Below the pieces are notes generated by a model. It saw only the letters and a list, made by a program, of their open reading frames with translations. It did no database searches and had not been told where the DNA came from. 64,000 bases of DNA. Origin: Salpingoeca rosetta (lineage: Eukaryota; Protista; Choanoflagellata). A program made the translations under genes and the position numbers. Shown in pieces: positions 31,392 through 41,408 of this stretch; the stretch's first letter is position 1; each line of letters starts with the position of its first letter. The stretch lies in NCBI GenBank assembly GCA_033442325.1, contig JAWQFM010000023.1, forward strand, positions 235,558-299,557, in the 5' to 3' direction.

Positions 31392-32949
31392 ATGGTTGCT
31401 TCCCTGGAGCCCCCTGGCCCTGCGCTGTGCGCAAGTGTTAGCGCAGAGGCAGACGCAGACGCGTTTCCGACCTCACGCTCCGCCAGCATGACGGTGTTTC
31501 CTGGTGAGATTGACGTCGAGGAGGAGGAGGCGGCCGTGCTGAGCGCGGACCAAACACTCATTCACCGCGAGCTGAGCGCGGGGCCCATCCTCGACCACGA
31601 CGAGCTGAAGAGCCAGTGCTCTGCAGAGCCGCCAGCCTGGTTCATGGACGTTTGGGACAACAATGGGTGGAGCTCCGCAACATCTGCCGCCAGCGAGCCC
31701 TCCAGCGATGACGAGAATGACAGTGACGACGGCCGTGTGATGGCACTTACTGCCAGCAACACCCTTCGCCTCAACATGATGTGCATCGAGGATGTCGAGG
31801 TGGACGAGATCGGCTCCCTGGGTGATGACACCCCGCAGCACGCAAATGCTGCCGACGGCACCCCTGTCTCACCTCAGCGCAGCATTGAAGAGGAGGATCA
31901 CCGCGGAGAGCAAGCAGAAGCGGAAGCGGCGGCCCCTACACGAGTGAAGAGAAAGACAAAGGTGTTGTTGGATGATGACCTGCATGGCTTTCCCGGGCGT
32001 GGCAGAAGCAATGCTTCATATCGCAGTGAACAGCTTGTGGCTGCCACTGCCATTGATGTACACGACGAGGATAATGATGGTGATGATGACGATGGTGATT
32101 ATGGTGTTTGTGTTGAGATGAGCGTTTGTGATGTGCATAGTTTGAACTGCGACGATGATGATGACGACGAAGACGAAGTGATCATCGATAGCGCGTCTTG
32201 GAACCTGGCCGAGGACCTAATTGATAGCTGTACCGACTTTGGCTGGGTGCGTCTTTGATGCCCGTTGTTCCTGCAGTTGCATGCACGAACACACAGTGCA
32301 CACATACAATGTGGTTTTCTCCCTCTCCCTTTCCTCCCATGCACACGCGCACGCACACACACACACTCTCTCTCTCTCTCACATTCACACACACACACTC
32401 TCTCTCTCTCACATTCACACATACACACATGCATCTGCTCTGCAATTTATGTCTATCCCATCTCACCCCACCCCTCTTTCCTCCAACGTGCAGACAATGG
32501 CCAAGTCGCGTGGTGCCCGCAACTACAAGAACAAGCAACGGGGCCGCAATAAGCCATACCGGTACAAGAACAAGGAGCAGTGGCGTGAGAGCGGCACCAA
32601 GCGCAGACAGGTCAAGAAGTGGCTCGCAGAGGAGCATGACAGCCGGGACGAGCACCAAGACCTCCGCACGCACATGCACGCTGCGGACTACGACCGCGTG
32701 TACGCTGGCGACACGGATGGTGTTGATGCGTACAAGCTGATCACCCACCCGTGCACGGCATGTGGTGCTCGCTTCGTTGCATCCACAGCTCTCCGTCGAG
32801 AATGCCATCGTCAGGCCGGCGGCGTTGATGGTGGTGGCAAGACCACCAAGAGCGACAACACTAGTCGTCATGGCAGTGGTGACAACAACCCTGCAAGTGC
32901 TGCTTCCCAACAACAACAACAACAACAGCAACAACAACAACAACAACAA

Positions 32950-33010
<61 letters not shown>

Positions 33011-33822
33011 GTGCCCGAGCCCGTGTGCGCCGCATTCCAACGCCCAAGACGCGTGGCATGTGTCCCGCGTGCAGTGCACACGTGCGCGTGGAAACGCGGG
33101 CGGAGAACAGGCGCCTTCGCCTGCAGGCACTTGGGGCGGAAGACGGTTACACCGACAGTAGCAACGACTTTGATCACAAGGGCAAGAACCGCAAGCAACG
33201 CAAGGATGACCAAGCATGGCCCACTGGCAAGGTGCTGGAGACAGCACGACAGGCACTGCTTGACTTGGAGGAGCAGGTGGTGGCGGCGGGTGCACCGTAC
33301 ATTCGCTGGCCCGTGCAGCGCGCACCTGTGCACGACGATGTACTGCGGGCGTTCCTGTCCACCCTGAGCCGAGTGATGAAGCGAGAGAGGATGAGGGGGC
33401 GGCGACCAATCAAGCAGAGAGGACGCACAAGAGGGAGCCGTGCACGCGCTGTGCAGGTGACGCAGACAAGTGCAAATGCCACCGCTGGCTGCACCCAGAT
33501 CCCAAACACACGGACACAGCTGCGCGTGACCTTCCATGGAACACCGACATACAACCACGACTCCATCTGTAGGCACGGCCTACTGGTTCCCGGCATGAGG
33601 GGGATCAAGGTTGCCAATGGCAGGGTGCACGGTGATGGCATCTACTCTGCAGCGAACGCAACCGTCTCGCGCTTCTACGCGCGCGGCAGCAACACCATCT
33701 TTGCCTGCGCCCTCATTGACGACTCGCAGGCACCCACGCCTGTTGTTCGCCGCTGTGGTGATATCTTCGTGTGCAGCAACCCTAACTTCATCTGCCCGCT
33801 CTGGATTGTCACTTACAAGTGA
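31392..33822 (+). CDS. PARP-type (ARTD) ADP-ribosyltransferase-domain protein with acidic N-terminus and poly-Q (probable exons ~31392-32246 and 32494-33822)
   Basis: C-terminal TFHGT...ICRHGL...HGDGIYSA...SRFYA...IFACALI...GDIFVC..ICPLWIV. A phase-0 GT (32247) to AG (32493) intron joins the acidic ORF to the catalytic ORF. The start is uncertain. Confidence 0.72.
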
Positions 33823-37800: not shown

Positions 37801-37993
37801 GTTGGTTACAGTGAACGACGGCAACAGTGGACATGTGCACTGCGCAACAAGGCTGAGTCGACCGGCAAAGAGAAAGGACGTGCGGAAGGCAAACGTCTCC
37901 GTACACCCGGCACACACACACACACACACACACACATGCACACATGCACACACATACACACACATACACACATACACACACATACAATCTGGG

Positions 37994-38124
37994 CTACAGC
38001 CTCTTCTTGAGGTCCTGGCATTTGCGCTTGAGCCGCTCGTAACGCCATCTTCGGAAGCTGCCGACGGCTTCGCGCAGCTCAAAGCCGGCCACTGCACAAT
38101 AAACAGCGACAATGCGCGCCAACA

Positions 38125-38187
<63 letters not shown>

Positions 38188-38494
38188 GAGACCCCATGTA
38201 TTTGAGAGTGAATGAGCGTGACAGAAAGAGCGAGCGCGCACATGATCATGTGTGTGTGTGTGTGTGTGGACACAGCAGCACGCAAGGTCAAACACAAACG
38301 ACGGGCGCGAAAGAGCAAAGCGATGACACGGACAAGTCCAAGAACAACCACATTATGTCAAAAGCAAGTCGGAAGGATGCAACTGCACGCACTCTGGCGA
38401 GCGTGTATGCACACAAGAGCAGACACTCTGCCTGCGCACCTGTGCCGAGCAGGAATGCGACGACAGCCACCGTGATGACCCCACGCGATTCCAT
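37994..38494 (-). CDS. Mitoregulin (MTLN)-like 50-aa single-pass microprotein, exons 38440-38494 and 37994-38091
   Basis: ATG in a CAAAATGG context and a phase-1 GT-AG intron at 38092-38439. The product is MESRGVITVAVVAFLLGTVAGFELREAVGSFRRWRYERLKRKCQDLKKRL*, a TM helix followed by a basic amphipathic helix. It aligns without gaps to human mitoregulin as recalled from memory. Confidence 0.7.
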
Positions 38495-38581
38495 TTTGTG
38501 CGTTGTTGTTGTTGTTGTTGTTTGCTGGTGCTGACGAGCGGGTAGCGGGGTGAGCAGTGTTGCTGTGTAGGCAGAGTGCAG

Positions 38582-38716
38582 CACACAGAGGGTGGAAAAA
38601 AAATGAATGCGATACTGGGGACAGGGTTGCCGTGCAGGCAGGAGGCACAGTGATGCAGAGGAGCACACACGAAGCAGCACACACAGAGCGTGGAGAAAAA
38701 AAATGAATGCGATACT
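38582..38716. repeat. Direct repeat (22 nt exact, ~35 nt imperfect, 100-nt offset) duplicating the tRNA trailer and oligo-T terminator
   Basis: GAAAAAAAATGAATGCGATACT occurs at 38595-38616 and 38695-38716, each preceded by CACACAGAG(G/C)GTGG. Confidence 0.9.
38696..38703 (-). terminator. RNA polymerase III oligo-T terminator (T8)
   Basis: T8 run 9 nt after the end of the tRNA 5' half on the minus strand. A second T8 lies at 38596-38603. Confidence 0.75.
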
Positions 38717-38798
38717 AGACCGGCGCTATAACCAACTAAGCCACGAGCCCCAATCAAAGGTGAGGGCCCGGTGAGATTCGAACTCACGGCCTCCGGTT
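38713..38798 (-). tRNA. tRNA-Thr(AGT), circularly permuted: 3' half 38798-38763, 12-nt spacer, 5' half 38750-38713
   Basis: Joining GGGCTCGTGGCTTAGTTGGTTATAGCGCCGGTCTAGTA to AACCGGAGGCCGTGAGTTCGAATCTCACCGGGCCCT gives a full cloverleaf. Acceptor stem GGGCTCG/CGGGCCC, D arm, anticodon stem CCGGT/ACCGG, loop CT-AGT-AA, T arm GTGAG-TTCGAAT-CTCAC, discriminator U. Confidence 0.88.
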
Positions 38799-38819
38799 GT
38801 CTGTATCCCTTCCCGTTAA

Positions 38820-38830
38820 CCATTCGGCCA
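38820..38830 (-). promoter_or_regulatory. Pol III A box in the leader of the permuted tRNA
   Basis: TGGCCGAATGG matches the TRGCNNARYGG consensus and starts 47 nt before the B box GTTCGAATC (38783-38775). Confidence 0.65.
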
Positions 38831-39868: not shown

Positions 39869-40972
39869 TCATGCACGGCGGAGACGGTTGAAGAAGTCTT
39901 GCACGTCCTCCGTCTTGCCGTGTGTACTGGCGTCCTTCTCGGCATCCCGGCGGGCCGCTTCATTGGTGCGTGCCACCAGGCGCGCGCTTCGCTGGATATC
40001 GTCGTCCACCGCCGCCCAAAACCGCTGCTTCATCAGATCGTACAGGATGCAGTCGGACCAGAACACCTTGCAGAACAGGTCGCGCGTTGCCTGCGACACA
40101 ACGACGGGAGCCTTTCCAACCTTCTTCAGGTGTGGATATATCGTATCTTTGTACGTCATGTTGAGGTTGCGCTTGAGCAGTGCCATCGACAAGTCCCACT
40201 CCTCGTTGAGCAACACAAAATCCAGGGAATTGACCAAGTCCTGTGCTTGTCCACGGAAGCCTGGTTTCTCGTCAACCTCATAGTCGCTGGCCAAGCCGAA
40301 GTCAAACGCGTACCCAATAAAGTGCAACTGCCGGGCGTAGCGCGACAGCTGGCCCCGCACGTCAGAGCGAGAGATGCGCTGTACCGCCTCCTGCAACCAG
40401 GCCTCGTTGATGCTGTTGCGGTCGAAGTGCAGCGCCTGCTGCAGCCTGCTGTTGCCGTAGTAACCCAGCGCCGAGATAAAACGCGTTATGGGATCGCGCA
40501 CGATTGTGAAGAGCTTGGGCTGGCCTGGACCCATAAGGCCCAGCAACGTCGCGCGGGACCGTGGCGTCCAGCGAATGTGGGAGATGGCCGCATGAAAGTT
40601 GAGGGGGTCGCGCCCGCACAGCGTGCGCTTGGGATCGACAAAGTCATCCGGGTAGCCCAAGTGATCGCGGCATGGCACCGCAGGCCTGAGGCCGCGGTGC
40701 TCGAGAGCATGCGCAAGCATGACAGTCACGCTCGACGACCCCGTCTTGTGCGTCTTGATGAATACAAACTCGGGAACATCGTTCGCACCAGAGTCCGCCG
40801 CCCTCGCAACATCTCGTCTTGCTGCCGCGCATGTTGCAGTCAAACTTGTGGCCAGTGTCACAGCCAGCACAAGCACCAACGAGAGCCCTGCTGCCGCCGT
40901 TGGCAGTCGGTGTGACACTCTCACCGCAGGCGAGTGCTCGTGCCCACAGTCGTCGACAACTACTACCGGCAT
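39869..40972 (-). CDS. Galactose-3-O-sulfotransferase-like Golgi sulfotransferase, intronless
   Basis: Type II anchor (LSLVLVLAVTLA), 5'-PSB FIKTHKTGSSS, 3'-PB IVRDPITRFIS, and FVLLNEEWDLSMALL. The start could be further upstream (41044). Confidence 0.85.
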   Translation of the reverse strand: MPVVVVDDCGHEHSPAVRVSHRLPTAAAGLSLVLVLAVTLATSLTATCAAARRDVARAADSGANDVPEFVFIKTHKTGSSSVTVMLAHALEHRGLRPAVPCRDHLGYPDDFVDPKRTLCGRDPLNFHAAISHIRWTPRSRATLLGLMGPGQPKLFTIVRDPITRFISALGYYGNSRLQQALHFDRNSINEAWLQEAVQRISRSDVRGQLSRYARQLHFIGYAFDFGLASDYEVDEKPGFRGQAQDLVNSLDFVLLNEEWDLSMALLKRNLNMTYKDTIYPHLKKVGKAPVVVSQATRDLFCKVFWSDCILYDLMKQRFWAAVDDDIQRSARLVARTNEAARRDAEKDASTHGKTEDVQDFFNRLRRA

Positions 40973-41166
40973 GATGGATGTTGTGTGCTGCTTAAAGAAA
41001 GAAGAAGGGAGGTAAGCTGAGGGCATGATTGCTGCTTCATGCATAACTTCAGGCGATTTTCGGTAAGACGTGTGTGTGAGTGTGAGTGTGAGTGTGTGTG
41101 AGTGGGCCCGTGTGAGTGTGTGTGTGTGCATGCGTGTGCGTGTGTGTGTGTGTTTGTGCGTGCGTG

Positions 41167-41226
<60 letters not shown>

Positions 41227-41408
41227 TGTATATGCACTTGTACGTGCGTGTGTGTGTTTGTGTGTGCGTGAGTGTTGTCATTTTGCTTTGTCTGCAAGCC
41301 TACTGCCTTGTTGTTCCACCTGGACACGCCGCCACGCTGCGTGCTCCTTGATCCTATGCGTCACACCACCACCACCACTCCCCGCACACCGCTGGCATGC
41401 CGTTGCAG

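Follow-up and report, generated by a model that had tools for sequence, protein, structure and literature searches.

In the choanoflagellate Salpingoeca rosetta, we examined a 64,000-nucleotide (nt) stretch of DNA (assembly GCA_033442325.1, contig JAWQFM010000023.1, positions 235,558 to 299,557; hereafter the window, numbered from its first letter). Its minus strand carries a small split gene that is likely to encode a member of the mitoregulin (MTLN) family. Joining 38494-38440 to 38091-37994, as read from the window by script, gives an open reading frame (ORF) of 50 codons in a 153-nt coding sequence with zero internal stops. The original prediction, made from the letters of the DNA, had proposed a two-exon small ORF in a unicellular holozoan, as S. 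rosetta is, and the spliced translation is exactly the peptide that it gave. It had also pointed out that a mechanical ORF list holds only unspliced pieces of the gene; indeed, these are ORFs of 130 and 67 amino acids (aa). The parts of the gene are as follows:

38495..38600, minus strand: probable 5' leader of the microprotein mRNA
38440..38494, minus strand: coding exon 1, 55 nt (18 codons plus one base of the junction codon, its first), starting with the ATG at 38494 and encoding the greater part of the transmembrane helix
38092..38439, minus strand: intron, 348 nt, GT..AG, with (CA)n microsatellites and the 3' end TTTATTGTGCAG
37994..38091, minus strand: coding exon 2, 98 nt, with the end of the transmembrane helix, the basic C-terminal helix and the stop codon TAG at 37996-37994

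The donor of exon 1 is CAG/GTGCGC, and the junction codon, G+TG, encodes Val. The start codon lies in a Kozak-like context, CACAAAATGG, and the nearest upstream in-frame stop is at 38728. The G+C content of third codon positions (GC3) is 0.78 in the coding sequence (0.72 in exon 1 and 0.81 in exon 2), and the overall GC content of the intron is 0.52. We place the probable 5' leader upstream of the start codon from three observations: the 200 nt ahead of the start codon on the minus strand contain no further ATG, the annotated N-terminal extension described below has a GC3 of 0.33, and the share of words found in sequencing runs fits transcripts that reach at least to 38600. Within the leader lie a run of (ACA)n and, with a run of T, an incomplete copy of the 3' end of an upstream tRNA gene.

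This tRNA gene is a permuted tRNA-Thr gene at 38696-38830 of the minus strand, the strand of the microprotein gene, whose ATG is about 200 nt downstream. The T arm of the tRNA gene is GTGAGTTCGAATCTCAC. ARAGORN, run over the whole window, reported no tRNA. The motif CCAGTATCGCATTCA, with a run of at least eight T behind it, occurs twice on the minus strand, once where the tRNA gene ends (38690-38716) and once in the likely 5' leader (about 38590-38620), about 100 nt apart. The 3' end of the tRNA gene, together with its RNA polymerase III terminator, seems to have been partly duplicated in the leader copy.

The annotated gene PTSG_09894

When the 31 aa of exon 2 were compared exhaustively with known proteins, one protein proved identical at 31/31 residues (100%). 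This is the hypothetical protein PTSG_09894 of Salpingoeca rosetta (EGD79163.1 / XP_004989248.1 / F2UNF8; here P0001), which has 149 aa and forms a cluster of one. The whole 50-residue peptide corresponds to its residues 25-74. Mapped on the window, the protein has five annotated exons:

38823-38788, minus strand: E1, 12 codons, inside the permuted tRNA-Thr gene; its donor GCC/GTGAGT is the tRNA T arm
38530-38440, minus strand: E2, adding 12 residues before Met25 from the (ACA)n run, GC3 0.33
38091-37999, minus strand: E3, which skips the TAG via the donor GCT/GTAGCC at 37998/37997
37852-37688, minus strand: E4, a doubtful C-terminal extension with a GC3 of 0.62, no Pfam family and a weak donor
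37377-37314, minus strand: E5, a doubtful low-complexity PR/Q tail and stop, following the weak donor CCT/GTTACC, with no family match

The junction of E2 and E3 is exactly the 38439/38092 intron, so the central intron of the annotated gene and that of the microprotein gene are identical. The prediction had called the microprotein hidden. This holds for the 50-aa ORF, which as a spliced unit is absent from the ORF list; it does not hold for the gene as a whole, since both exons and the splice belong to PTSG_09894. The annotation was made in 2013 without any domain, and no mention of PTSG_09894 was found in the main texts of the literature searched.

Two features set the ends of the annotated protein apart from its core. 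At the 5' side, E1 is probably an annotation artefact, because it lies inside the tRNA gene and uses the T arm GTGAGTTCGAATCTCAC as its donor. At the 3' side, the TAG is bypassed solely through a GT inside CTG-TAG (GCT/GTAGCC). By our own count, the donors of introns 3 and 4 (GCT/GTAGCC and CCT/GTTACC) match the consensus MAG/GTRAGT at 3-4 of 9 positions, versus 7 of 9 for the central intron. Residues 75-149 of P0001 have no Pfam match. PTSG_09894 appears to be a microprotein gene inflated by gene prediction, and both extensions, the first exon and the TAG-skipping C-terminus, are more probably artefacts than parts of the true product.

Match to the mitoregulin family profile

The Pfam family PF22002 (MTLN) has a profile length of 56 and a curated gathering cut-off of 27 bits, and the library searched holds 24,736 models. 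The joined peptide was searched as P0001:25-74, and the exons were also searched singly. The joined peptide matches PF22002 with 35.3 bits (E 1.1e-8), which is 8 bits over the cut-off; its residues 3-50 lie on profile positions 6-53 of 56 in one stretch, and the search gave one further line, at E 4.7. With the full 149-aa protein the score is 33.4 bits, and profile positions 4-53 are matched by residues 25-74. Searched alone, exon 2 has PF22002 as its sole Pfam hit (19.2 bits, E 0.0011, profile 25-53), and the exon 1 pieces of 20-21 aa, which are too short, give no Pfam hit. Judged by the family's own criterion, the peptide is in all likelihood a mitoregulin family member, and the profile is covered collinearly and near full length, provided that the 50-aa reading is correct. 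The likeness to mitoregulin was the core of the original prediction, which had set it against a generic transmembrane segment and basic helix lacking a significant profile match. What the search returned is near-whole cover of PF22002 above the cut-off.

The properties of the 50-aa peptide fit the architecture described for mitoregulin (Mtln), in which a conserved, hydrophobic transmembrane segment at the N-terminus is joined to a C-terminus that is positively charged and exposed to interaction partners (review PMC11920140). The most hydrophobic 17 residues are 6-22, with a mean Kyte-Doolittle value of 2.46. Residues 24-50 hold 11 K/R versus 3 D/E, and the net charge is +7. AlphaFold2 predicts one helix over residues 4-49 with lower confidence at 21-30, a dip that we read as a possible hinge between the membrane anchor and the basic helix.

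We propose the following mechanism by homology. The N-terminal helix would insert into a mitochondrial membrane, leaving the basic helix exposed. The basic helix may then bind acidic lipid (cardiolipin) and/or membrane enzymes. In this way the protein would tune the lipid and respiratory functions of mitochondria, for which vertebrate Mtln provides the reported precedent. The reported partners of Mtln include cardiolipin, CYB5R3, HADHA/B, CPT1B and others; both the partner claims and the membrane in which Mtln resides, inner versus outer, are disputed (PMC11920140).

Product of the gene and competing explanations

Taken together, we consider it likely that S. rosetta possesses an MTLN (PF22002) member encoded by a two-exon gene, whose likeliest product is a 50-residue single-pass membrane microprotein. 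Several observations weigh against this interpretation, and each is given below with the alternative that it bears on. First, the real product may be the annotated 149-aa PTSG_09894 or another longer isoform, of which only residues 25-74 would be mitoregulin-like. We regard this as unlikely, although a public model exists and the S. rosetta annotation was refined with RNA-seq by PASA/Inchworm, so that it may reflect a real isoform. The third intron also has a reasonable acceptor, and for the short product the splice junction, the transcript ends and the use of the TAG are predictions. On the other hand, the homology begins at Met25 (profile position 4 of 56) and ends at the residue before the TAG (position 53), and the relatives found in the ESM Atlas are 59-60 aa long. 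The extensions are of low complexity and belong to no Pfam family; their GC3 of 0.33 (5' extension) and 0.62 (E4) compares with 0.72-0.81 in the core. We infer the 50-aa product over the 149-aa one because Met and stop lie near the ends of the profile, the extensions have no family, their donors are weak, the first exon overlaps the tRNA gene, and the GC3 of the extensions is low.

The expression data bear on the same question. Fairclough et al. 2013 (Additional file 8) list counts for PTSG_09894 of 104, 35, 45, 31, 96, 88, 71 and 70 in eight RNA-seq libraries of thecate, swimmer, rosette and chain cells. In addition, 20 sequencing runs of one organism contain part of the stretch. In six of these runs, which come from four studies, the share of sampled 31-mers of 37960-38600 that are present is exactly 0.38, a figure that gives no view of which words they are. 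RNA without only the intron 38092-38439 predicts (132-30+161-30)/611 = 233/611 = 0.38, whereas the full annotated splicing predicts 0.21. By arithmetic on this summary number, the plateau at 0.38 fits RNA that lacks only the central intron and keeps the sequence past the TAG, which speaks against the longer model. The remaining runs, at 0.23-0.33, match partial cover or other isoforms and come near the prediction for models with more introns, which favours it. The expression of the gene rests on the published gene-level read counts and this indirect k-mer share.

Second, the likeness could have arisen by chance or convergence, in which case the peptide would be a generic transmembrane helix with a basic helix behind it and would not be related to mitoregulin by descent. 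This is improbable. In its favour, both proteins are tiny and compositionally simple, and for such a short family HMMER statistics may be optimistic. In a six-frame PF22002 search of the whole genome (55.4 Mb, 68 contigs), exon 2 came first with 20 bits (E 0.04 per genome), just 1 bit over the best noise hit, which has 19.1 bits and two internal stop codons; the following hits have 14-15 bits. Exon 2 by itself is at the noise ceiling only. The case for common ancestry lies in the whole peptide, whose match stands 8 bits over the cut-off among all the models searched, with MTLN alone save for the one line at E 4.7, and covers the profile end to end. Exon 1 adds about 16 bits, gap-free and in the correct register across the splice. 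There are 171 in-phase ATG-to-GT first-exon options within 1.5 kb, for which choice about 7.4 bits have to be allowed; the splice was fixed by the annotation published in 2013, ahead of the 2018 mitoregulin papers.

Among the 7.7 million clusters of the ESM Atlas, the two nearest to the peptide are both 100% PF22002: the first (0.82, 172/256 features shared) is 59 aa long with mollusc members, and the second (0.81) is 60 aa long and chordate. As values below 0.9 these are leads only, but they name the same family as Pfam. Scores of 0.8 are also reached by one in three shuffled proteins. In the ranking by predicted structure, the mollusc cluster takes second place (TM 0.83/0.73). Its members show that the family is already wider than vertebrates. 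The literature, for its part, reports no invertebrate gene (PMC11920140). No shared intron supports homology, because vertebrate MTLN is coded in one exon.

A scan of metagenomes gave a single match, L005:96-2087 on contig ERZ773050 NODE-316, a bacterial secreted hydrolase of 663 aa whose LPXTG-type anchor (LAHTG, transmembrane segment, basic tail) has the 8-mer VAVVAFLL in common with the peptide. As a relative it was rejected as a chance sharing, with no MTLN match at E<=10 despite the identical 8-mer and the basic tail. It serves instead as a negative control for a transmembrane-plus-basic protein, because it carries VAVVAFLL and a basic end and yet has no MTLN match; this argues against convergence.

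Two further candidates from the exhaustive exon 2 search were rejected. P0002, a tandem-repeat protein (420 aa, of unknown origin), owes its E of 6.9e-9 to the sum of six weak repeats, each 43% over 23 residues, which we take to be a repeat artefact, and P0003 has no aligned stretch. A scan of prokaryotic genomes found no relative of the peptide, and a sequence search of the PDB gave nothing meaningful. Word-based protein searches with region 28-67 of the 67-aa ORF and with P0001:25-74 had no match; they need common 5-mers and are silent on distant kin. A second non-animal homologue was not found in the searches made, which favours convergence, word-based and pattern searches being blind at about 30% identity.

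Third, an ORF that is transcribed but untranslated, in a non-coding or decaying locus beside the tRNA gene, is highly improbable: the read counts are modest and the leader holds tRNA-derived sequence, but the frame is intact across the splice, the start context is strong, with no ATG ahead of it, third codon positions are rich in G+C, and the peptide scores above the profile cut-off.

Comparison with animal mitoregulin and neighbouring features

Vertebrate mitoregulin (MTLN/MOXI/MPM/LEMP/SMIM37, the product of LINC00116) has 56 aa, and the S. rosetta protein, with 50 aa, is about 6 residues shorter. Its identity to the human protein was put at 12/39 residues, about 30%, in the original prediction; the family assignment here uses the Pfam profile instead. 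The two have in common the match above threshold on profile positions 6-53 of 56, the N-terminal transmembrane segment with a basic C-terminus, and a small gene that is poorly handled by annotation. They differ in the host, which here is a unicellular choanoflagellate, and in the gene: the 348-nt intron splits the ORF here, and the vertebrate ORF is confined to one exon. By language-model features, the nearest known group is the mollusc Atlas cluster (59 aa, 100% PF22002), but its members are animal, not protist, and the relation is a lead. Other small proteins of the type of UQCC5/SMIM4, UQCC6/BRAWNIN and STMP1/STREMI belong to the same class, being below 100 aa, membrane-embedded, mitochondrial and conserved beyond animals (PMC9681215). 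These are unrelated families, and none of them matched the S. rosetta peptide in Pfam.

A 2025 review (PMC11920140) describes mitoregulin as conserved in vertebrates and reports the belief that the gene is missing from invertebrates. This agrees with the original prediction, which took mitoregulin to be described mainly from vertebrates; the mollusc Atlas members widen the family. No report linking mitoregulin to a choanoflagellate homologue was found in the literature. On the strength of the sequence comparison, mitoregulin is probably older than animals. We lean, with some reserve, towards the fuller proposal that it is not a vertebrate invention but already existed in the ancestor that choanoflagellates share with animals, and that in S. 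rosetta a small spliced mRNA of its own yields a true orthologue of 50 residues.

A choanoflagellate member would move the origin of the family before animals, and the positions common across that distance would mark its functionally essential core. If the proposal is true, it offers a genetically tractable unicellular system to settle the role of mitoregulin and the mitochondrial membrane in which it resides. S. rosetta is a simple, CRISPR-tractable organism, suited to localisation and knockout tests. The novelty here is the recognition and interpretation of a non-animal member of a known family, not a new sequence. F2UNF8 is in UniProt and over the Pfam cut-off, and domain databases may already list the match.

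A scan for bacterial-type promoters and terminators was uninformative for a eukaryote. Elsewhere in the window, at 39872-41281 of the minus strand, lies a 470-codon ORF with a Pfam match to Gal-3-O-sulfotransferase (PF06990, 74 bits). The N-terminal part of this ORF is a (CA)n microsatellite read as an HT repeat, and because of this read-through the true start is probably further in. On the plus strand, an ORF at 32224-33819 has a borderline match to the PARP catalytic domain, with 26.3 bits versus a cut-off of 26.7.
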